From positions 1 to 64,000 of the forward strand of contig LSRY02000004.1 of the NCBI GenBank assembly GCA_001643675.2: DNA of 64,000 nt, read 5' to 3'. Origin of the DNA: Monocercomonoides exilis PA203 (Eukaryota; Protista; Preaxostyla). The position numbers and the translations under genes are program-made. Positions 8,832 to 46,882 of this stretch are shown here, in pieces. Positions within the stretch are counted from its first letter, which is position 1, and every line of letters begins with the position of its first letter. The notes below the pieces were generated by a model that made no database searches, was not told the DNA's origin, and worked only from the letters and a program-made list of their open reading frames with translations.

Positions 8832-11780
8832 TCCTGTCACACCAAAGTTACAAAGGGGATAACTTCTTATATACAACTCTTGGGGTAGTTGTTGTATTAT
8901 ACGGATAATTTTCTATTAACAACACATTTGGTAGACTAGAAGGGATGCATAGATAGAATTGTTGTCTGACCTCTCTTTGGAAAGAAAAACATAATTTATA
9001 TTTTGACTGTAAAATGACTGAAAAAACATTGAAAAATTCATATCTCCACAAATACTGCAGATATTAACCTGACATTATTTCTATAAACATATCTCTTCTT
9101 TACTAACATATTGCGTATTTTTATTTGAAATGAAAATTCTGAGTTAAATTTATAAAAATTAATTATATCTCATTTTCTATGATAACCTGAGTGAAGAATA
9201 GTCAATTAATGTGAATATTTTGTAATTTTTCATATTTTTTCTGTGTTTTGGAATATCACCGATAATTCATAACTAAAATGTGGGTGAAAGGATTTGGCTC
9301 AATTCCCCTTCTCCATCGAGATACACAATTTTTTGTGTTTCGAAATTCTGACAGATCCTTTAACAAAAAATATTCGTTAAAAAAAAACCAAAAGTCCAAA
9401 TAGATCGAGTTTAAGTTAAATAGTGATATATCATTCATGTGATTATCAATTTCACGTAAAAAAAAAACAGGTCAAAAATGAAAATAAGTGAAAAAATTGA
9501 TAATTCAAAGCGAACAGAAATGATCAGATAAAAAATGATTCATCTTTTCTCCAGAAACAAACTTATAATTTTTATAATAACCATCAATATATCCTGTGAA
9601 ATCAATGTGATATAATTGTGTTATCTTTCAATTTTCCAAAAAAAGATTTTTTTTGGGAAAAATTTCTCTTTGTTTGGTATGTTTTGTCAATGTTTGAATA
9701 AATCCAATTTATCTTTACAACGCTTCCATTATTTCTTGATCTAACGTTGCTCATTGAAATCTATTTGACAGTTCTTGGTCTATAATTTATCAAAGTCATT
9801 TTTTTCCTTCAATATTCTAGAATTAAAATCGTCAATAAGAAGAATAGCAAATTTTTTTGATGTTTTTCTTTTCAACATGTAACAAATGGTCAAAAAGCCA
9901 TACAATATCATCTTCCACATTTTATAAAGAGTTAAATCCATGAAAACAAAATGTTTTGGTCATATATTTTTTTCTTGAAAAATGTGATCAAGTTACATAC
10001 TAAATTTAATCATTAAGTGAAAACAACTTCTCTGTTAATGAGACGATAACGTTTTGCTAATTTGTTGAATATCGGAGTAGTCAAATGCATGTTATTTACA
10101 ACTACATTGAATACAGCCAGTTTGAGTTCTTTTATTTGTGACTTTTTCTTATCATTCATTATTAGCCGATTTTGTTTGAATAATAGACATTTTTATTCCT
10201 CCTCAAATTTCAATCTGGAATATCTGGGTCATGTGAGACAATTATTCAACGCTAAAAATCATGGACATTTCGTTATAACTGCGTGAGAATTTTTTTGATC
10301 AGGAATGTTTGCGTGATGCAAAAATTTCACTGTTGGACAATGAAAATGCGTATTTTGAATATACAATGTATGGTTATTTTTTCATGATTTTTTGGAGGTC
10401 GAACTTTACCTATTCTGGAAAATATTGTATTTAGATAATTTTTATCATATAATGACGCGCAGACCGATTACTACCAGAATTCTCGGGAAATTTCATGAAT
10501 ATTATTGCTCAGGACAACTTAATTGTGCTTTATTTGCTATAAAAAACGGAAAGCAATTTCAACTATTCAAATTTGCTTATGAATGAAATTTTGATCAACT
10601 CGGAAAATAACTTTGACGCTGGTGCTCGGCCATTTCCCAGCCACTTGCTGTCATGCAGACTTTTCTGGATTCGATTAACGTATATACAAATAAAGTGTTC
10701 TTTATTTGGATTGAGGCTGCTGATTGTATAGTTATCTTTCGAAAAATGATGCAAAGTGTACTCTTCTGGAGGCGCGTAGACATCTAAGCTGAATGACATA
10801 TGAACAAAGAAAACTGCTAAAAAAGAAGTCTTTTGTATGTACAATCGTTTCTTCGTAAATTCTTCACAAATTTAGCCTCTTCCTGTTATCAATCGACATA
10901 TCTGTACATTCATACTCATCTAAAATTATCTTCTTAATTCCAATACATTTGCAACCTGCAATGAGAATTATTCTTCATTCTCCCGGGGAATTTTAAATCT
11001 GAAATGGAAGTGTTGCAAAAAAAAAACGAAGGAAAATGAAGAGAAATGAAAACGAAGAATTAAAAACGAAGATATTTGAGGAATTGCAACTTTTTTGCAC
11101 AAGAAGCTTTCATATGTTCTGCAATTTCTGAACTTGAATAAAGGAAGAAAAAAGGAAATGGACAGAAAGTACTACAAGCGCAACTTTAAAGAAGTTCGAC
11201 AATTCATTCAACTACAGCATTGGTAGAAAGGCCTGTTGCTGTTTGACGGAGAAAATGAGTCATCGGCAATTTTTACGTTCATAAGAAAGCTTTTTCATGA
11301 ATGTTAGACAGCTTTGAAAAAAGAAGTGAATAGTTTCTCATATGAAACTTCTCCAGGCTTGTGCGTTTTGATATTTGCTTGTGAATAATCATTTTATACA
11401 GCTGTCACTTTAAGATGTTTTGAATTTTCACGCTACACATGTTTTTGATAACAAAAAATTTCATTTTTTTAATTATGGAGTAAAAATAATCATTTTTATC
11501 AGAATTTCTTTAATACATTGATTTTGTTTTCACATAAAATGAGTCGCTATTGAAAATACACTTTTTTTTGAAGAAAATTTCAACGTAATTTCCAACAATC
11601 TTCAAAAGAATTATTGAATTTACGTCAAGCTTTTTACAATATTTGATCAAATTTAAAAAGAAAATCGACATGTTTTCGCAAATGACGCATAATCATATCA
11701 ATCAGATAATTTGACAGCACATCTTTCGATATGTTTTGCTCAAAATTGAAATTTTATTCACTTTTCAAACATTAAGTCAA

Positions 11781-34949: not shown

Positions 34950-36559
34950 AAAGTGTTGTTATTTGAATTATAAACAATTAAACGATTTTCATTTGTTATG
35001 AATTCATTTCAACCATTTCATTTTCAAATAAAATAATGAAAATTAATTTATTGTAAATGTTTGATGAAAAGATACACCAAAAATAATTCATGTGACTATT
35101 CCTTTTTGAAAACATACTTTCATTCTTATTTCGTTCAGGCATTTTTTATCTATGGAAATAAGTGGAATTCAAATGTTTTCTGTTTTCTGTTTCAAATATA
35201 TGGGTGATTATTTTTGAAATCATATTTTTTCTGTAAAAATATTTGGATTGAATGTCTGTTTTGCATATCTGTCAGTGAACATTGAAAAGTGATAACACTG
35301 TCCGCAAAATAATGTCATTAATGTAGCTCAAATGTGTGCATATGAAATAATTGCAATTTATTAAATACTCGAACGATAATCTTCTAACAATTATCAAAAG
35401 AAAATAAAATAATCGAAACTCTGAAAAAAGTTATGCTTACAAAAATAATCACCCATATTATCATTAACTTTTCACCATTTTTGTCCAAATATCAAATTGT
35501 TTATAAATTCTGAATAACTTCCGATTATTGCATAAAAATTTAACCAAACCATAAAAAATGTTGTTAACAAATAATTTTCTTATAATATCGATGAGCTGTT
35601 ATATGAAAAAATACGTTCAAACAAATAAAAATCTATAAAACAATTTCATGTCTGATTCTTCCCGATTGGATGCTTTTTCTTCATCGTCTTTATTTTTTTC
35701 TCAGTCGAATAAATTGAAGTATCAGTAACTTCTGTTTCTGCAGATGAGAGGCTGCTCCTTGCTGTTTCTGTTTCATCTTCACTTATTTCGTGAATCACAT
35801 CAACCTTTTTTGGCGAGATATAATCTAGTTGACAGACGAGTTGAGCAAAAATTCAAATAGTAAATGAAAAGCTCACTATTACTAATTATTTTACAATTAT
35901 TCTTATTTGGCGAAACTTCGTCTGTCATGTTCAGTTTTAAAAATGTTAAAAATAAAAAAATAATGGGTGAGATCATTGATTTCATCTGCGTTTTTCTGTT
36001 TCTCCACATATGGCTAAATTTTTTTGAAAAGTGACATCAGATCAAAAACATGACCCATGGCAGTTAATATATAATCATTCCGTTTCCATTATTTTTATGA
36101 AAAGATTAAAATTATAACGAAAATGCTTATCTGTTAATTGCAATCTTCTTCATGAAAAGAAAATGTTTAAAGCAAAAAATTATATATTTGATTTGTTGAT
36201 CAAAATAAAAAAATATAAAATTCTCAATGAAAAAGAGTTATATTTGCTTTAACTATCATTCAATTACTGACCAGTGAATTGTTAATGGTTTATTTTATTC
36301 TTTTAAAGAATAAACAAAAACAGCGATTATCATTGAAGTTTTTTATTAATAGGAATTTTATGTGGCTCAAAATGAATAATAACATTTCATGGAAGTAAAT
36401 ACAGCTTGTACAAGTGGGATTGAACAAAAATTCTATCAAACATTGATGGTTTACAATTTGTTTTTCTTTATATTTTAATAATTTTACACCTTTTTTTGTG
36501 TCTCAAATTTGTCGCAGATTTCTGAAAGCCTTTGAGAAAGAACTTGCAATATGCAAATT

Positions 36560-37020
36560 TACAACAGATTCATAAGAAGATGAAGAAGATTTCTGCTGAC
36601 GGTTGTGAAATGAAAGAGTGAGATGATATTTGTGTCTTCTATTACAAGAAATCACGAGAATAGCAAGCAATGTGGAGAGTTCAGTATGCCATGCCACTCA
36701 TTGAGCTTTGGAGTGCAACACATCATTCCATCTCTGTACTCGCAGCTGTTGGCCTCGGGGCAAACAGAAATTGTTGGGGAATGCGAAGCAAAGGATGTTA
36801 GCATCCACTCACTGAAACCTCCCTTCGCTACTTTTGTATATCTGAACTCAACAATTTCTGACAATGAAGGAATTCTCATCTCAACCTCAGAGACTGTTCG
36901 GATTGAAAGATTGAAATTCAACTTTTGGCAGTTATTTTCATATTCAGGCAGTTCTATTATTCATGAAGCATATGGACAGCTTCCTCTTTCAGTTGTTGAT
37001 TTTTCTTCTTCAAAGTCTTC
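36560..37020 (+). pseudogene. Fragment of the giant surface-protein family
   Basis: IFVSSITRNHENSKQCGEFSMPCHSLSFGVQHIIPSLYSQL aligns by eye with IVVSSLSEYGGENERQCGTYVLPCLSLGYAISHVTSDFDSRL of the 19188-31496 protein. Upstream stops; no signal peptide or TM. Confidence 0.75.
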
Positions 37021-37048
37021 TTTGTTATCATATATTTCTTTTTTTATT

Positions 37049-37606
37049 TCTTCTTCGTCTTCTTCGTCTTCTTCGTCTTCTTCGTCTTCTTCGTCTTCTT
37101 CGTCTTCTTCGTCTTCTTCGTCTTCTTCGTCTTCTTCGTTTTCTTCGTCTTCTTCGTCTTCTTCGTCTTCTTCGTCTTCTTCGTCTTCTTCGTCTTCTTC
37201 GTCTTCTTCGTCTTCTTCGTCTTCTTCGTCTTCTTCGTCTTCTTCGTCTTCTTCGTCTTCTTCGTCTTCTTCGTCTTCTTCGTCTTCTTCGTTTTCTTCG
37301 TCTTCTTCGTCTTCTTCGTCTTCTTCGTCTTCTTCGTCTTCTTCGTCTTCTTCGTCTTCTTCGTCTTCTTCGTCTTCTTCGTCTTCTTCGTCTTCTTCGT
37401 CTTCTTCGTCTTCTTCGTTTTCTTCGTCTTCTTCGTCTTCTTCGTCTTCTTCGTCTTCTTCGTCTTCTTCGTCTTCTTCGTTTTCTTCGTTTTCTTCGTC
37501 TTCTTCGTTTTCTTCGTCTTCTTCGTCTTCTTCGTCTTCTTCGTCTTCTTCGTCTTCTTCGTTTTCTTCGTCTTCTTCGTCTTCTTCGTCTTCTTCGTCT
37601 TCTTCG
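37049..37606. repeat. 9-bp tandem repeat (TCTTCTTCG)x62 with occasional TTTTCTTCG variants
   Basis: 558 bp of in-register 9-mers, followed by a short (CCTTCA)n-like run at ~37637-37690. Confidence 0.97.
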
Positions 37607-37949
37607 TATTCTTTAATTTCATCATCTTCTTCTTCTCCTTCTTCTCCTTCACCTTCTCCTTCACCTTCACCTTCACCTTCGCCTACACCTTCTTCAACTT
37701 CTTCTCTTCAAACGTTATGTTCAGAAATATATTGAAGGAAGACTGTTGTATTCTCAGTGTTAACTGCATATCTGTTTCTTTCAAAAGCTTTTTGAAAGAA
37801 AATGAATTCGACAAGAAACAGGAGATAGAAAAGGATGAAAAAGGAAAAGAAGATGATAACTCTGATGAACATGTCATAAGAAAAATCAAAGCGTCGATCG
37901 CATCTTATACGCATTCAAAGAACAGCAGCATGTTGTTTATTGCAATCTC

Positions 37950-40900
37950 TTTCTCACTCAAACCCTTCTCGAGCTATTATGTAAAAGTTAAAAAAGAAGA
38001 TAATAATGAAGCATGAAAAGGCATTGGCTCCTTCTCCCTTCCAGTGCCATGTCATTGTGTCGTGAGACATAACAACTCGCTGCCAGTCCCACAGTGGCAG
38101 CTTAAAGAAGATCTCCCCTTCCACCTCTTTCTTCCAATTTGCAGTCCCACCAGCTCCACCAGCAGCCGCACCATCCGGAACAGCGCCTGCCGCCCTTCTT
38201 TCTTCCCCTGCCGACACACCTACCAACACCCCCGCAAATTCCCTTGAAGGCGCGCACGCTCAGTCGTGAAGAACCTGCTTCAGCAGCGCCAGTTGCTGGC
38301 TCACCATCTTTATATCCCCTCTGTTCTCATTCATCGAAAGAGGCACCCACCATTCTGCTGTGTCGCACACATCCGGCAGTTTCAAGCAGCGCATCATGAA
38401 GTAATTGTGCTGGTATACCTCCAGCACCGATGAAAATGACAACAGACAGCAGCCCGACAGCCGGGACTCATCCCGGAAGATCCGCATCGACAGCGCCTTT
38501 GGAGTCTGCGGATAGCACACACAGAAGAGACTCAGCCTGTAAGAACGTTATCCCTCTGCAGGCTTCGTTCAGCGAAAATGAAGATGGAGTTGATGGTTCG
38601 CCTCTGCGTATGGAATCATACAGCGCCCTCATTGCCTCCTTCCACTTCACTGCCTCTGCCAGGTGATAGTTCAGCAGAAACCCCAGAAACACTGACGCGT
38701 CCGCCTCCCCCTTCTCCGACTGCAGCCCCTCAAACTCCTCCCAAAACATCTTGATCTTCTTTTCAGAAGCCCCTTCAAACAGCGTGTTGGAGCAATTCCG
38801 GAACATTCGGAACGATATTGTAAGGAAGTCCTCTTTCTCATTCATCGGCTGCTTATGCTGCTTGCCTTCAAACTGCATCGTGCTGCAATAAAGGAAGAAA
38901 GACAGCTCATCTCCCGTAAAATCCTCCGGCATGTACTTCCCAACTGCTGCACATGTGAAAATTCCTTTCGGAACAACATCACATTGCAGATCATTGCCAT
39001 CAGCACTGCCTCTTTCTTTTAATTCTCCTAGAACTTCTCCCCCAGCCGCAAACACACAAAATCTTCAAAACATCTGCCTTGGAAGTTCCACATCTTCACA
39101 GTCGGAGCTGCCATCACTCAAATCAACCAATATCTTGTCTCTGTATATTCCCTTGATCGTCGGCTGCATCCACGCCAGCTTCCGTCGCTGTCCTGTCTTC
39201 AGCCACTGCTGTCTCGACTGAATCGACATTGATAACTTATATATGTGCGACATCAGAAGCATATGCACAATTTCGAACACCACCTGCTCCAGCAAAAAAG
39301 ACACTGAGCTCGTCGGGCGCTCCATCGTCTTTTCAAACGACAACTTCACTTTCTTCTGCTCCTGCTTTTTGAAAACATAAGAATAATTTGCTGCTTCTCA
39401 ATCACCTCCATAAACAGCGCCATCTACTCGCTTGTTGTCTATTCGTATCCTTTCAGCAGCTCCATCAACATTTTTGTTTCCTTTTCCATCTGGTTCATCT
39501 TCTGCTTTACAGTTGTATCCACTCATCCTCCATCACCATCACAAGCATTCTCTGCTCCATCGTCATTTACTTCTCCTGCAATATTCACTCCTCTGCTCGC
39601 TTTCACAACAACAACCTTCTCGCTCGGGTCTGATACAACCATCACACTGCAGCCATCCCCGATGCTCGGTGCAAATTTTCTTAGTCCTTTTCAAACAACT
39701 CCGATGGCTGAATCATCGAAACCGAAGATTGAACCAGCATGCCCCTTCACAGGGCTCAAAAAAAAGCCGGCGTAAATAACACCCTTGGCGCATCTATCGA
39801 AACATTGCTTTCTCCACTTTCCACTTCGCACTTCTTTATCTTGATTTTCAACTCCTTCTCTATCCCCACATAAATAAATTCGACTTTCTCCTTCATGGCC
39901 GCAAGCTGCTCCTAAAGCTCCTTCACCTATGCATTGTGCTTCTCGTTCAGCTCCTGAATCTTCCTCTCCCGCCGTAGGATAATCTTGTTCTTCTCCTGCA
40001 GCTTCTTAACCAGCCCACTCATCCGCAACGATTTCCGCTCGTCGTCCCGGATCTTCTGCAAAAGTATATTGAACTCCGTAGACATCTTTACCATCTCATG
40101 TTTCTCCTCCTCTTGCTGCTCCTTCAGCTCCCGGATTTGTCTGCTCATCCCTTCATTCTCCCCTGCAATCTCGGATTTCTGCGCCTCGCACTTCACACAC
40201 ATCTCACACAGTATATTCACCGCATTCACCATTTTCCTCTTCAGATCTTCCTCCATATTCTTCAGCTCTTCGCCACTTCGCGCACTGTGGGCAAGTGTCA
40301 TATCGCTTCCTTATCCAGCTTCACCACCAAACGCACCGACTGCGGTGATCGCAAATCCAGCTGCAATGTTATAAACAGATTGCATTCACATCTGCCGCTT
40401 CAAAGATTCGCTTGCTCCCCGACTTCGTGCACATAGACGCTGCAAGCGACTGAAGCTGTGCCACGAACTGAACCTTAAGCATCGCAGAAAGCTCCTCATC
40501 GCACGCTCATACAACACCCCCATACAGCACCGCCAGTCGCGCCACAACATATCCATGCAGCGTCCGTTGCTCCCTCAGTTACGAAATCTTTTGATTTTCA
40601 TACACCCCAGCCACCTCTCGAAGTCGTCCATCGCTCCTGCCGACGTGTATGGTGCTGCCACCGCAGATGCATCCGAAGGGTCAATCGCAGGTGCTGAAGA
40701 AGAAGAAGAAGATAGCTTATCATCTCCTGCTGCCTTCTTCTCGTTGCTTTTCCGCCTCAGGAATGGCGAAGCTGATCGGCGTGCTGCTCCAGTTGAAGAA
40801 GACGAAGGCGCTGAGTGAAGAAACGACTGTTACGCTGCTCCCGCCACAAGAAGCTTTTTCAGATACCGCACTACGTCTTCAGGCTGCCCTAATGGTGACA
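37950..40900 (-). pseudogene. Disabled GC-richer coiled-coil-containing gene (multiple nonsense codons and frameshifts)
   Basis: Chain of minus-strand ORF pieces (39927-40301, 39065-39349, 38468-39055, 37954-38229) with coding-like composition. In-frame stops such as KHNA*VKEL*EQLAAMKEK. Family not recognised. Confidence 0.6.
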
Positions 40901-41904
40901 CAAACACAACATTTTCATTTGTATCAGAATGGTTGACCAGCCGAAAAAATCTGCTTTTTTCATGCTATTTGAAAGGATAATTGTAGGATATTTTTCCATA
41001 ATGTGTCAATATTAAAAGGAAGGGAAAAGGGAAAGGCACATCCTGAGATGAAAGAAACTTGATAATATAGATTGATTAAATCAAAAAAAAAGAAAAGTTT
41101 GTTTTTTTTTTTTTTTTTTTTCATTTGTAATAAATGGTGATTTATTTTGATAAACAACATTAATAATTAAATAAATGTCAACTGCTTTTTGAATATTTTT
41201 CGATAACAACGAGCAAAGTTTTGATGAATTTTTCCTGTTTGATTAATTCTTATGAAAAATTCTTGAATTAAAGCAAATCAATTTTATTCGTTTAACAACA
41301 AAAGAAAATTATAAAAAATTGTATGACATCCATGAATTTTTAATGAATATTCGAATTGATGAAATGAAAATGCAGAAATAAGAACATGCAATTCATTTAA
41401 TTCAAATAGCTCGAAAGCAGTAGCTAAAAAAAGCATTTGCTAATAAATTATTAACGTTCTGTCTGTTATCATCGGATCTTTGAAATGCTTTTAAATAATA
41501 AGCTCAGAAAACAACAATAAAAAATTAGCATAAATCTTATATGGGAACGGAATGATCAACTTTTTTGATCATTTGTGATCTTTTGTGGGACAAAATTAAA
41601 GTGATGGAACTTTACAAAAAAATTTTGCCATATAGCTTTCAAATATTGATAAATTCTGCTGCTTGTGTGTTTGTTTATGTAGTTTATTTGTTTTTATCAA
41701 TCTTTATTAAAAATATTTTATTTTTTGTTGCTTAATTTCGATTGTTCACTTAATCACTTTCACTTTTGCTCGAAACAAAAAGGTGAAGAAATTGGCATCA
41801 CGGAAGTGTGATAACTTATTAAATATTATTAACTTTTATTCATTTTGAAATTTAAATACTCGATATTATGTTTTTTTATTTAAAATTCAATATTTTTAAC
41901 TTTA

Positions 41905-42719
41905 GTGTTGCGCCGTATCTAAGATGATGCGAAAATTTGAACAAACGAAAGAATTAATCAAAGAAATGAATAAAAAAGAATTCAAATCTTTTTTTTCATT
42001 TGAACTGTTCGGCAAAATGCACAAAATGTTTGACGAAAGAAAATTAGGTTGGAGAAAGTTGCTGCTTGCTGAAGGACATGGGATATTACAAAGTGCTGAA
42101 AATGACTTTATTATATTCTTTTGATGAATCTTTTTTGAGAGATCGATTTCAGAAAATGATCATTGAAGAAGAAGAGAGAAAAAAAGAAGAAAAGAATGAA
42201 AATCTTCTTGTTGGACTTTGTGAATGATTTCTTTTGCTTCATGAGAATATTTCAAGAGAATTTGCTTCAATATGTGTCCGTTGCCTTCTGAAAGTTGCAG
42301 CGAAGAAAGAGGAAAGCGAGGAAACACAAAAAGAAGTGGAAATGGCATTGCTGACTTTGATCAATACTTTCTGTTACGTTTGAAATTTTCTATTTTCTTT
42401 TGATTTTTTTAATTTTTATTTTATTTTTTTATCAGCCAATCAAAAAGGAACTGTATTTGAGTGAAATTATAGAAATTATAAAGCGTCATCAAGAATTTAA
42501 CAATCTGACACGACTTGCTTGTCGCTCTGCTTGGGTATTTTTAATAAACCGAGTTTACAGTGACAAAAGTTTGGAAAAAGTGATTGTGGATAAGCTGCAT
42601 TTTGTGAGAGATGCGACAAGAAAATTAAAAGAGCTGATAAAATGCATAAATTGGTAGTAATAAGATGAAGAGGAAATAGGAAGAAAAGAAGGAAGCAGCA
42701 GAAGTGGCTGAGAAGAAGA
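41905..42719 (+). pseudogene. Captured, frameshifted fragment of a host helical-protein gene family (left TIR copy), retains an intron
   Basis: Frames give RFQKMIIEEE, ICVRCLLKVAAKKEESEETQKEVEMALLTL and ELYLSEIIEIIKRHQEFNNLTRLACRSAWVFLINR. GT-AG intron at 42378-42435. Resemblance to an expanded Monocercomonoides hypothetical family is from recall and needs BLAST. Confidence 0.7.
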
Positions 42720-43155
42720 GTACTACTAAGTAATTAAAATGATATAAGTTGGAAATTGAAACTTATATTTTAATTTGATTTATTATTGTATTTGTTCCTA
42801 CAAACATTTTTTTAATATATCGTTAAAAATAAATTGAAATTATATGATTGTTATTTATGATATTTTTAATTGATAAATCCAATTGTTGTTTTGTTTTCAA
42901 TTGTTTGTGTTTGATGAAGACTTAATAAATAAATGAAAATGAACTTCTTTGTTGTCATATCTCAATATATTTTTTTATCAGTGGAATGAAGAATATTTGA
43001 AAATATAATTGAGACAAAATATTCATTCTTTGATAATCAAAATTTACAAAAATGTGGAAAAACTCAATGAATGAGTTACAAGGGCTTCTTTTAAATGTGA
43101 AAACATTTAAATAATCTTACATATATTTTTGTCTTTCTCCGTATGGAGGAAGATA

Positions 43156-43917
43156 TTATCTGAGAAGGTTCCAAGTGCTTTCGATTCTTTGTGTGTGAGC
43201 CTTTGAAATAGGATCCTCAAATCTTTTTTTGTGATTGACAGTAAAATGCGTGTATCCAGCTCCATTTAAATTGTTATATCCCCTCCAACAATCCGTGTAT
43301 ATTTTTGTTTTTTCCTTCACATAACTTTTGATTGTTTGATGCAGTATTTCTCTTGATCTTTTCAAAACAGGAATTAAAAACAGATTGGATTTTTGACCCT
43401 TTTTTTTCGGACGTTCGATTCCTCCAATGATCCAATTTTGTCTTTTTGTTCTACCTCTATTGTATTTTCTTTTAGGAAATATTGCTTCATCAATTTCCAC
43501 TTCAGTTCCTTTTCCTCCAATAATTCGCGGATTTTCCATGTAAAATTTTGATAAACATTTACGAAAAGAATCATAAGCATGCATCACAGAAATATTTGAT
43601 TTTCCACAAATGAAGCTACAATGTGTCTGAGAAATGCCGAACCAAAAACATAAAGCCATCAAACAGATATTACATATTTTGAATCTGAATTTTTCAAAAT
43701 TTGTATTTTTCGAAATTTTGATTTGTTTATGTTTGCAACGAAAGCGACTTGTTTCATTTTCATAAACGTAGATTTTCATATTCTTTTGGCACTTCCAGCA
43801 ATAGCCGTCTTTTTCCAAGATCTTATGATCCAAAAGCCAATCAATTGTTTCTTTTTCTGATCTGAATATATGAAACAATTTTTTAAACTGCTTTTGATTA
43901 TCTGCTTTGGTTGGCAT
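43156..43917 (-). CDS. ISXO2/IS1595-like (Merlin) DDE transposase, C-terminally truncated by nonsense codons
   Basis: N-terminal CxxC...C (CWKC, FRC), then GGKGTEVEIDE, KRKYNRGR, WIIGGIER, IYTDCWRGY and HFTVNH..F....AHTQRIESTW. Homology appears to continue past the stop: LLR*YLPPYGERQKYM*DYLNVFTFKR. Confidence 0.93.
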   Translation of the reverse strand: MPTKADNQKQFKKLFHIFRSEKETIDWLLDHKILEKDGYCWKCQKNMKIYVYENETSRFRCKHKQIKISKNTNFEKFRFKICNICLMALCFWFGISQTHCSFICGKSNISVMHAYDSFRKCLSKFYMENPRIIGGKGTEVEIDEAIFPKRKYNRGRTKRQNWIIGGIERPKKKGQKSNLFLIPVLKRSREILHQTIKSYVKEKTKIYTDCWRGYNNLNGAGYTHFTVNHKKRFEDPISKAHTQRIESTWNLLR

Positions 43918-44348
43918 AATATTTCAAATAGAGTGTTAAAAAAAAAGATTTATAGAATTATTCAAGTTTTGATCTTCATATGTGAAAAAATAGAAAAAAA
44001 AAGACAGATTAGTGAAGTGAAATCAACAAATAAGATGCCAAAGGCACTTCGAAATAAAATTTTGAAATAAAACGAAAAATTTAAAATCTCAAGATCAAAT
44101 AAAGATTCAAAAATAATCTGGAATCAAATTACAAAAATAAATAATAAAATTATGTTCTACTAAGAATAATAGACAATTTACACAATATTTAACATGAAAA
44201 GTTCAAATTCAGTTCAACAACAATGATATAATCGAAATATAAAAAAATATATGACACTCAATACAATTAAAAAATAAATTCGTAGAAACCATTATTTCTG
44301 TCATTATCGAAGCTATATCCACTTATCATTCTTATTCTTTTGCTTCCT

Positions 44349-45163
44349 TCTTCTTCTCAGCCACTTCTGCTGCTTCCTTCTTTTCTTCCTATTTCCTCTT
44401 CATCTTATTACTACAAATTTATGCATTTTATCAGCTCTTTTAATTTTCTTGTCGCATCTCTCACAAAATGCAGCTTATCCACAATCACTTTTTCCAAACT
44501 TTTGTCACTGTAAACTCGGTTTATTAAAAATACCCAAGCAGAGCGACAAGCAAGTCGTGTCAGATTGTTAAATTCTTGATGACGCTTTATAATTTCTATA
44601 ATTTCACTCAAATACAGTTCCTTTTTGATTGGCTGATAAAAAAATAAAATAAAAATTAAAAAAATCAAAAGAAAATAGAAAATTTCAAACGTAACAGAAA
44701 GTATTGATCAAAGTCAGCAATGCCATTTCCACTTCTTTTTGTGTTTCCTCGCTTTCCTCTTTCTTCGCTGCAACTTTCAGAAGGCAACGGACACATATTG
44801 AAGCAAATTCTCTTGAAATATTCTCATGAAGCAAAAGAAATCATTCACAAAGTCCAACAAGAAGATTTTCATTCTTTTCTTCTTTTTTTCTCTCTTCTTC
44901 TTCAATGATCATTTTCTGAAATCGATCTCTCAAAAAAGATTCATCAAAAGAATATAATAAAGTCATTTTCAGCACTTTGTAATATCCCATGTCCTTCAGC
45001 AAGCAGCAACTTTCTCCAACCTAATTTTCTTTCGTCAAACATTTTGTGCATTTTGCCGAACAGTTCAAATGAAAAAAAAGATTTGAATTCTTTTTTATTC
45101 ATTTCTTTGATTAATTCTTTCGTTTGTTCAAATTTTCGCATCATCTTAGATACGGCGCAACAC
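44349..45163 (-). pseudogene. Captured host-family fragment (right TIR copy)
   Basis: Reverse-complement duplicate of 41905-42719. The ORF translations are identical except the terminal CINW/CINL. Confidence 0.7.
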
Positions 45164-46882
45164 TAAAGTTAAAAATATTGAATTTTAAATAAAAAAACAT
45201 AATATCGAGTATTTAAATTTCAAAATGAATAAAAGTTAATAATATTTAATAAGTTATCACACTTCCGTGATGCCAATTTCTTCACCTTTTTGTTTCGAGC
45301 AAAAGTGAAAGTGATTAAGTGAACAATCGAAATTAAGCAACAAAAAATAAAATATTTTTAATAAAGATTGATAAAAACAAATAAACTACATAAACAAACA
45401 CACAAGCAGCAGAATTTATCAATATTTGAAAGCTATATGTGGAGAAACAGAAAAACGCAGATGAAATCAATGATCTCACCCATTATTTTTTTATTTTTAA
45501 CATTTTTAAAACTGAACATGACAGACGAAGTTTCGCCAAATAAGAATAATTGTAAAATAATTAGTAATAGTGAGCTTTTCATTTACTATTTGAATTTTTG
45601 CTCAACTCGTCTGTCAACTAGATTATATCTCGCCCCTTTTTTTTTTTGTTTCATGGATTGCATTCAGAAACAATATCTATTATATTTTGTTTTGTTATTT
45701 TCTCCATTTTCAATAGATTAAGAATAATAATAAATTCTTCTTAATGACTTGTTCTTTTTGGGAAGAAGCAAATTTAAAAATTACAAACGAAAAAAATTTT
45801 TTGTATTTTTTGGAAAATGTTTGTTCACATCCACGAAACATTTAAAAAACGGATGATGCGAATTGAGAATGCTACCATTTTAATTCTGATGGAGTTTCGT
45901 GAGTGGAAACAGTAATTTAATCAAGATTTGCTTTTTTTTATTTCATTTGAATATTTCACATTTGCGTCTTTTCAAAATGAATAACATATTTGATTCATGC
46001 TTGTTCCGTTTTATGACAAATACATTTTTAACCCGATCCACGCAGTTTCAATTTTATTTGTGAGGCAGTCTGTTATTTCAATTTTAATTTCTTTGCTTTT
46101 GTCAAGTGTTTCGTGATCAAATTTAAGCATTAGCAACTTTTAGTGTGATTTCCAACTGGCTGATTGAATGATTGCGTTCAGTTTTTTGGTTTTCGATAAA
46201 TAATTCCATACAGTTTTTGAATCTCTTTTTCAAACAGGTATTATGAAGGATTTGTTTTCCAACAATTTTTTCTCTTTTATGTCCAAACTTTATTCACAAT
46301 AACTTCTGTTTCCTTTTCAAATGAAAATCAATATTTTATATTAACAAATAATTTGTATTCCAATTCACCAAATTTCTTTTACGTAGACTGATAATATTGT
46401 CAACCATTTCCATCCATTCGAGAAAAGTTTATTGAGCGGGAATAGGAAATTTATCAAAATAAAAATCATTTATTTAATTTGAATTTGACAAAAGAGAATT
46501 GTCAAAAAAAAAAAAAAAAATGGATATTTCCATATATAAATAATTGATGTTATTCAGATTTCTGATTGATTGATCAAACAAAAAATTTTTTTACTGCGTT
46601 TTCTGGTCGAAAATTAAAAGAGGAACCTTTGCTTTGACAATTGAAAAATGTTAAAACTGTAAAAAACAAATATCCAATTTGAAAAGACATATTTTTTAGA
46701 AAAATAAAAGAAAACAAAGTTCTTTTTTATTGTTAGTCAAATAGAAAAAATATTCGATGTGAATAATTTGTGTTTGAATTTCATTCGAAACATTTTTATT
46801 GCCATAATAATTAAGTTTTGCTTCCTTTTTATTAAAATAAGTTTTTAGTTTTATTTTATTGAAATTATACATTAACATAAGA

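Follow-up and report, generated by a model that had tools for sequence, protein, structure and literature searches.

Near the middle of a 64,000-nucleotide stretch of the Monocercomonoides exilis PA203 genome (the window), a DNA transposon is bounded by inverted arms of more than 1 kb that are almost letter-perfect copies of each other, and the locus raises the question of whether such arms reflect a young insertion or a process that keeps them alike. The first-pass annotation described a recently inserted, unusually long-armed Merlin family in a metamonad-like genome; the host is indeed a metamonad. We consider it probable that this is a non-autonomous cut-and-paste copy of the Merlin superfamily, belonging to a clade with long terminal inverted repeats (TIRs) whose arms are homogenised by intra-element gene conversion.

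Boundaries and make-up of the window copy

The features of the locus are as follows, in window coordinates.

35804-35811, no strand: left 8-bp target site duplication (TSD), CCTTTTTT, by sequence comparison
35812-36011, plus strand: left arm, outer 200 bp, first letters GGCGAGATATAATC
35831-35839, plus strand: GACAGACGA motif, 20-28 nt from the end, candidate transposase-binding site
35918-35926 (inverted), 45520-45528 and 45607-45615 (mirrored): further GACAGACGA motifs, candidate transposase-binding sites
36012-41629, plus strand: nested 5,618-bp element with imperfect 28-bp TIRs (GGCTAAATTTTTTTG...)
41634-42719, plus strand: left arm, inner 1,086 bp, by gapless comparison
41900-42695, plus strand: pseudogene fragment of an uncharacterised MONOS gene family, left arm (arm positions about 467-1262)
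42720-44348, no strand: unique central region, 1,629 bp
43033-43155, minus strand: rest of the transposase frame past the first premature TAA, holding a second TAA
43156-43917, minus strand: truncated transposase ORF, 253 aa, with D143, D209 and E246 and a PF12762 match
44349-45634, minus strand: right arm, 1,286 bp without interruption, by gapless comparison
44373-45168, minus strand: the same MONOS gene-family fragment, right arm
45635-45642, no strand: right 8-bp TSD, CCTTTTTT

Elements of the Merlin superfamily and IS1595 begin with 5'-GG and make TSDs of 8 or 9 bp. Both termini of the window copy open with GGCGAG, a start also found on other copies with preserved ends, and the flanking TSDs are exact. 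When the nested insert was taken out, gapless comparison gave two arms of 1,286 bp whose sole mismatch is a G at 42653 opposite an A at 44415, and whose identity breaks down at 42720/44348; the arms account for 2,572 bp (61%) of the 4,201-bp core. The annotated GGCGA termini, TSD, arm lengths, single substitution and core size (about 4.2 kb, some 60% TIR) were therefore all borne out, and with GG ends, 8-bp TSDs and a DDE triad all present, so was the assignment to Merlin/IS1595. All four GACAGACGA matches in the window lie inside the arms (chance expectation, 0.24), with the end motifs confined to the outermost 115 nt of each. Searching the 82.3-Mb Nanopore assembly of M. exilis PA203 (101 contigs) with the 24-nt end sequence returned 58 matches at up to three mismatches; the reversed control returned 0. 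In short Logan contigs, all from one sample, the empty site caaCCTTTTTTtttttg did not appear, nor was a paralogous empty site found within the genome, where other small repeats make up the flanks and end before the insertion point.

The nested element is flanked by a 4-bp ATAT duplication (36008-36011 and 41630-41633), and its empty site is preserved in the right arm. A second copy of this element, 99% identical, occupies C39:615196-620840. No transposase can be recognised in the nested element, whose ORFs have no Pfam match above gathering thresholds.

Each arm begins with about 470 bp of Merlin end sequence, followed by a pseudogene fragment of about 790 bp and a 30-bp repeat unit. The unit occurs in about 1 to 13.7 copies, and in elements other than the window copy it forms an array of 2.5-14. 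The fragment is a frameshifted, internal part of a host gene family with more than 300 members, whose matches are MONOS_ proteins of M. exilis and which has no Pfam match above gathering thresholds. It is present at the DNA level, with an intron-like gap retained between its two reading frames. Only about 165 bp of arm sequence, in the outer part with the GG end and a pair of GACAGACGA motifs, is common to the subfamilies; the arm beyond this conserved part is passenger DNA. The breakpoints of the gene fragment are identical in six subfamilies, which disfavours separate captures in each and favours a single capture as the probable history; the star-like tree is indecisive.

We also considered a composite transposon, in which the transposase gene would lie between two copies of a smaller mobile unit in opposite orientations, as with IS10 in Tn10. 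The length of the arms and the presence of several unpaired ends in the genome fit this model, and composite-like eukaryotic elements such as KolobokP are on record (PMC9587614). Against it, the Merlin end motif occurs at the outer arm end only, with GACAGACGA and GGCGAG missing at the inner boundary, so that neither arm has terminal repeats of its own; the inner boundary consists of the gene fragment and a 30-bp repeat of variable copy number, and TSDs bound the whole unit. We regard a composite origin as very improbable.

Transposase and the wider family

The central gene, annotated as an ISXO2-type transposase, matches PF12762 (DDE_Tnp_IS1595) at 7.5e-15 over profile positions 6-126 of 153. 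Two TAA substitutions, at 43156-43158 and 43117-43119, cut it to 253 of 295 aa, and both are backed by short-read contigs (43089-43247 and 43105-43228). An alternative genetic code for these in-frame codons was ruled out, since other copies have AAA and CAA there. Lacking a full-length open transposase gene, the window copy is non-autonomous, and could move only with transposase supplied by the intact copies on contigs C35 and C32. The intact ORFs match PF12762 over positions 6-151 of 153 (C35, 2.1e-19; C32, 9e-18) and NF033547 at 92 bits (cut-off, 75). Aligned with 12 homologues, the transposase shows no variation at D143 and D209 and almost none at E246; the best transposase matches are 30-40% identical, and the named minority among them are insect and EukProt proteins. 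Omega between subfamilies is 0.07-0.11, which indicates a long history as an active element, and synonymous divergence across subfamilies reaches about 1.2.

We compared the window copy with eight others (C35, C17, C23, C8, C32, C1, C7 and C6), a partial census of a genome with about 16 further pairs of ends, which bound elements of 2.0, 2.7-2.9, 5-10 and 25-34 kb. Those with individual measurements are listed here by contig.

C35: arms about 1,334 bp, 99.9% identical, no TSD
C17: arms 1,302 bp, 92% identical, TSD AAAAAAAC
C23: arms 1,425 bp, 99.6% identical, without clear TSD
C8: arms 1,237 bp, 99.9% identical, TSD GGAGATCA
C32: arms about 1,733 bp, 99.7% identical, TSD CAAGTTTG
C1: arms 1,100 bp, 99.5% identical, without clear TSD
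C7: arms 1,944 bp, 99.85% identical, TSD at 7 of 8 positions

Short TIRs in other copies would have made the long arms a one-off; instead, at least eight other copies carry arms of 1.1-1.9 kb, and the two arms are 99.5-100% identical in seven of the eight. Long arms are a family-wide trait, with TIRs of 1.1-1.9 kb in every full-length copy of the clade examined. Perfect 8-bp TSDs flank the window copy, C17, C8 and C32, and none flank C35, C23, C1 and C6. Kilobase-scale, near-identical TIRs with a variable internal tandem repeat give these elements a foldback-like or Galileo-like architecture.

The inverted arrangement, above all a 2.4-kb palindrome that reaches into the flanks of C35, rests on the published Nanopore assembly, and chimeric fold-back reads can yield palindromes in such assemblies. 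An artefact of this kind, or a one-off local inverted duplication, nevertheless has a minimal probability in our judgement. The same architecture occurs at nine loci on nine contigs, the 8-bp TSD is perfect in several further copies, and both arm/centre junctions of the window copy are bridged without differences by short-read contigs (four runs, dated 2016 and 2022, from one sample, which is the assembly's own). A short-read contig of another copy parts from the window copy exactly at 45634, and a 2021 study recovered the same transposase from an older 454 assembly (Lopes et al. 2021, PMC8101967). Polishing with short reads could slightly raise arm identity; however, a 7.7% arm difference survives in C17, as does the one mismatch in the window copy.

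The arms of each copy evolve in concert

Arm identity is 92-100% within a copy and 60-92% between copies, and arms cluster by element rather than by side: in the arm tree, each left/right pair is sister with a support of 97-100 or has identical sequences. The C1 copy has 7.3% private substitutions and six transposase stops, there are several differing positions in its outermost 20 bp and its left end has decayed to TGTGAG, yet its arms are only 0.5% apart. The window copy likewise shows 1.13% private substitutions in its centre versus one arm difference in 1,286 bp. In C35, which has no TSD, inverted identity runs on for 1,098 bp into the flanks; because the right side passes uninterrupted into a resident repeat, it is the left copy that is secondary. 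Grouping by element and the arms of C1 and C35 suggest, as the probable route, that one arm is repaired from its partner. For a divergent 400-bp patch between the C17 arms, a host paralogue was considered as the donor in a recent ectopic conversion, but no extant donor exceeds 76% identity.

Cut-and-paste transposition carries the arms along and does not renew them. Arm identity therefore does not date an insertion, and that of the window copy is no sign of a recent one. The notion that this copy, like the others, was inserted so recently that homogenising is unnecessary draws on its perfect 8-bp TSD, its single arm mismatch and the 99% relative of its nested element, which indicates recent mobile-element activity at the locus. 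However, as both arms travel unchanged, each lineage must still maintain their identity; the closest sister copy is only about 92% identical in the arms, decayed C1, C7 and C23 have arms that are 99.5-100% identical, and C35 combines the lack of a TSD with mirror identity reaching into its flank. We therefore find this explanation quite unlikely. The annotated recent insertion was not supported: dead copies too have near-identical arms, and in the window copy the transposase is interrupted by two nonsense mutations and the left arm by a nested 5.6-kb insert.

As family knowledge suggests, a 295-aa transposase with a Cys-rich N terminus and a DDE_Tnp_IS1595 core would bind the outer parts of the arms, excise the element and insert it by an 8-bp staggered cut. 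Breaks in one arm would be repaired on the template of the other, which we propose as the source of the near-identity of arms within an element, and repair running past the arm boundary would lengthen the repeat, as may have happened on C35. Lying within inverted arms, the gene fragment is present twice in mirror orientation. The giant arms might then be an adaptation, serving as mutual repair templates that long preserve the transposase-binding ends, and read-through transcription might produce hairpin RNA from the mirrored fragment, which would link silencing of the element to the family of more than 300 members, or to sequence exchange with that family; we hold this combined idea to be rather doubtful.

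Comparison with known systems

The elements share with the Merlin superfamily (Feschotte 2004), and with M.sp_G1, a transposase of the DDE_Tnp_IS1595 type and its D-D-E triad. Lopes et al. (2021, PMC8101967) placed this lineage of Monocercomonoides sp. PA203 within Merlin as M.sp_G1, the G label marking groups without TIRs and TSDs, and gave TIRs of 23-29 bp for the seven other families in the same species. The start of the C35 transposase is identical to their printed LSRY01001805.1 sequence at every residue given there. Whereas M.sp_G1 was filed as lacking TIRs and TSDs, here it has TIRs of 1.1-1.9 kb and clear TSDs; the 2021 element sequence starts at the arm boundary and stops at a contig end, the old assembly having broken at the arms. 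These results correct the record for one Merlin lineage of an amitochondriate model protist. They also mean that dating long-TIR DNA transposons by arm identity, a shortcut borrowed from LTR elements, must be avoided. The nine copies across subfamilies form a clean natural data set on the homogenisation and lengthening of inverted repeats: one of them is decayed while its arms are identical, and another has been caught growing into its flank. The general phenomenon is known from Galileo, and the gain is thus incremental.

Long arms hold across the family, but the annotated unusual arm length was an overstatement, as kilobase-scale TIRs have precedents in Merlin: Merlin-1_DR and Merlin-N5_DR of zebrafish in Repbase have TIRs of about 1,000 bp with tandem repeats inside (Lopes et al. 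2021 Table S1, PMC8101967). Compared by description only, these differ in their vertebrate host and in that a host-gene fragment in the arms is unreported. Pack-MULE-type capture likewise places a DNA-level host gene fragment inside a DNA transposon; here, unlike in that type, the carrier is a Merlin element with a transposase, and the fragment sits in its inverted arms. Galileo, of the P superfamily in Drosophila, has TIRs of up to 1.25 kb; within a copy these match at 98-100%, and internal tandem repeats make their length variable, with extension ascribed to break repair on the other TIR (Marzo et al. 2013, PMC3573991). The superfamilies are unrelated, Galileo having a THAP/P transposase and a 7-bp TSD versus IS1595/Merlin and 8 bp here, and in the Merlin elements, unlike in Galileo, arm extension also runs outward into the flank, as seen in C35.

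The window copy and its transposase

The features needed here are as follows.

1-122: irregular CCCTAA/CCTAA telomere repeats at the window start
35804-45642: Merlin/IS1595-type transposon including TSDs (window copy)
36012-41629: nested element, 5.6 kb, imperfect 28-bp terminal inverted repeats (TIRs), 4-bp ATAT duplication
43156-43917, minus strand: transposase ORF, 253 aa, PF12762 match over profile positions 6-126 of 153

We rebuilt the left arm (TIR) by joining 35812-36011 to 41634-42719 and compared it gaplessly with the reverse complement of 44349-45634. A single mismatch (42653 versus 44415) was present among 1,286 aligned positions, identity was lost just past the last of these, and a repeat search returned two inverted pairs corresponding to one arm interrupted by the insert. 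The termini are GGCGAGATATAATC, CCTTTTTT adjoins both element ends on the outside, and the core (element minus nested insert) is 4,201 bp, 61% of it arms. The gapless comparison, ends, TSD and core length confirm every figure given for this copy in the first-pass annotation.

Alignment of the transposase with 12 homologues of 285-330 aa showed D143 and D209 to be invariant and E246 nearly so, with the window ORF ending ∼45 residues early. Its frame runs on past two TAA codons. We rejected a variant genetic code because other genomic copies carry AAA and CAA at these positions, and the two codons are therefore nonsense substitutions. Over 43089-43247 and 43105-43228, short-read contigs (Logan, four runs from one sample) match the assembly. 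A six-frame search of the genome gave 133 Merlin-type matches, including seven loci at 79-100% identity to the C35 protein (copies are named by their M. exilis contig) and eleven further matches at 57-66%. Five near-full-length matches from these two groups (C35, C8, C32, C9, and C28) have no internal stop; that of C8 stops at residue 286, its frame shifted by a 1-nt deletion. C35 and C32 have uninterrupted 295-aa ORFs, which cover the whole domain and score above the NCBIfam IS1595 cut-off. The dN/dS ratio was 0.07-0.11 between subfamilies versus 0.45 against the window copy. We conclude that the window copy belongs to a long-TIR Merlin clade and is itself defective.

The nested element has a shared subterminal motif (ATCATTCCGTT), a 9-bp array of 67 copies of TCTTCTTCG (37049-37650), a GC-rich middle, and no Pfam match. 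Its empty site is preserved in the uninterrupted right arm. A full-length copy, 99% identical, lies at C39:615196-620840, and others are 90%, 82%, and 69% identical. Because ATAT also adjoins the nested-element end in a contig from another copy, a preference for an ATAT target is suggested. The Merlin element's flanks (35198-35458 and 45752-45993) are small dispersed repeats of ∼200-280 bp, each with dozens of genomic copies at 70-94% identity, one with 33-nt inverted ends. A partial LSU rRNA match lies elsewhere in the window (8274-8851, minus strand); it is broken or carries deletions, since model positions 2391-3399 fit into only 578 nt.

Long arms across the genome and a captured host gene

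We searched the M. exilis PA203 Nanopore assembly (N50 1,379,369 bp; PMC8767320), comprising 82,301,135 bases in 101 contigs. The 24-nt Merlin end occurred 58 times at ≤3 mismatches (control, 0), forming ∼25 pairs spaced 1.0-34 kb apart. Arm measurements cover part of these, with ∼16 pairs outside the census.

Merlin copies measured elsewhere in the assembly (copy: element; arms; arm identity; TSD)
C35: 4,325 bp; ∼1,334 bp; 99.9%; none
C17: 4,327 bp; 1,302 bp; 92%; AAAAAAAC
C23: 4,598 bp; 1,425 bp; 99.6%; no clear TSD
C8: 4,167 bp; 1,237 bp; 99.9%; GGAGATCA
C32: 5,354 bp; ∼1,733 bp; 99.7%; CAAGTTTG
C1: ∼5.15 kb; 1,100 bp; 99.5%; none
C7: 4,930 bp; 1,944 bp; 99.85%; 7/8 positions
C19: 10.8 kb; ≥1,126 bp; 99.6%

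With arms of 1,100-1,944 bp in other copies, the long arms are a family feature, as had been proposed, rather than a one-off with short TIRs elsewhere; the window copy is a real element, typical of its family. Conservation common to all is limited to the outer ∼165 bp (83-97%). The same end also occurs in pairs ∼2.0 kb apart with identical end variants (C18, C21, and C91) and in pairs 2.7-2.9 kb apart (C12, C19, C6, C23, C30, C15, and C48), which look like transposase-less derivative families. One of these, L036 (C6:758873-761574), has 461-bp TIRs that are 98% identical, without a TSD.

Arm positions 1 to ∼470 are Merlin-specific, with GACAGACGA at positions 20-28 and inverted at 107-115; its four matches in the whole window all come from the arms (0.24 expected by chance). 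At positions ∼467-1262 each arm carries an internal segment of a host gene, made up of residues 34-179 of its first reading frame, an intron-like gap, and residues 1-70 of its second. This piece shows 54-57% identity in protein sequence, contains a stop and frameshifts, and is 79% identical in DNA to its closest complete paralogue. The host family, in which we found no Pfam domain, numbers at least 315 proteins in M. exilis, each ∼440 aa long; all of the matches listed bear MONOS-type names. Its genes have two reading frames separated by ∼55 nt (genomic stretches L019, L022, and L014); L022 and L026 are near-identical paralogues. The breakpoints are the same in six subfamilies, favoring one old capture of the fragment; the DNA tree of the fragment is star-like and does not settle single versus independent capture. 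The inner arm edge is a 30-bp unit, present about once in the window copy and 2.5 to 13.7 times in others, and unit number explains a large part of the differences in arm length.

Arm identity and insertion age

A DDE cut-and-paste transposase moves both ends unchanged, and transposition renews nothing in the arms. Each copy's left and right arms are nevertheless sisters on the arm tree, with 8-40% difference between copies. Over 888 central columns, 10 substitutions are private to the window copy, a rate at which arms decaying independently would differ at ∼29 positions; one difference is seen. Short-read polishing might slightly inflate arm identity. Private substitutions reach 7.3% in C1, which also carries six stops, yet its arms differ by 0.5%; its outermost 20 bp, adjoining non-homologous flank, have diverged. 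In C17 (stretch L032, C17:162020-166346), the 7.7% arm difference is confined to one ∼400-bp patch (arm positions ∼600-1000; 54-84% identity per 100-bp block versus 97-100% in the rest), and the genome search found no donor above 76% identity for either version. Arms of different copies are mosaics in which near-identical blocks are mixed with strongly divergent ones.

The C35 copy, with its intact transposase, lies as assembled in a palindrome with 2.4-kb arms (C35:18152-24673; stretches L038/L039), mirror identity extending 1,098 bp past both element ends without a TSD. Apart from a resident short repeat, this flank is found at these two places only. A resident repeat crosses the right outer boundary unbroken but not the left, which makes the left flank copy the secondary one and places a new joint at C35:18151/18152. 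The tree pattern, C1, C17, the mosaics, and the C35 flank fit a mechanism in which a break in one arm would be repaired with the other arm as template, at times overrunning the arm boundary.

With arms evolving in concert, their identity carries no age signal, and the earlier proposal of a recent insertion was not borne out: insertion age cannot be read from arm identity. From the intact TSD and the nested insert, which is still unconverted, it follows only that there has been little change since the last homogenization.

Comparison with described elements

Lopes et al. 2021 quote a Merlin TIR range of 24-462 bp and report TIRs of 23-29 bp in seven M. exilis families (PMC8101967). Their supplement includes this same transposase (LSRY01001805.1) as a member of group G1. 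In that study a G label denotes groups with no TIRs and TSDs, whereas the lineage described here has kilobase TIRs and, in several copies, 8-bp TSDs; their entry begins at the arm boundary and runs to a contig end. Kilobase arms are not new to the superfamily, because Repbase Merlin-1_DR and Merlin-N5_DR have TIRs of ∼1,000 bp (Lopes et al. 2021 Table S1, PMC8101967). We found no account resolving the arm structure of this lineage in the literature searched, but elements of this kind are already known. For Galileo, Marzo et al. proposed that TIRs are extended by break repair templated on the other TIR (PMC3573991), and repair with the other arm as template is the explanation offered both there and for the long-armed Merlins here.
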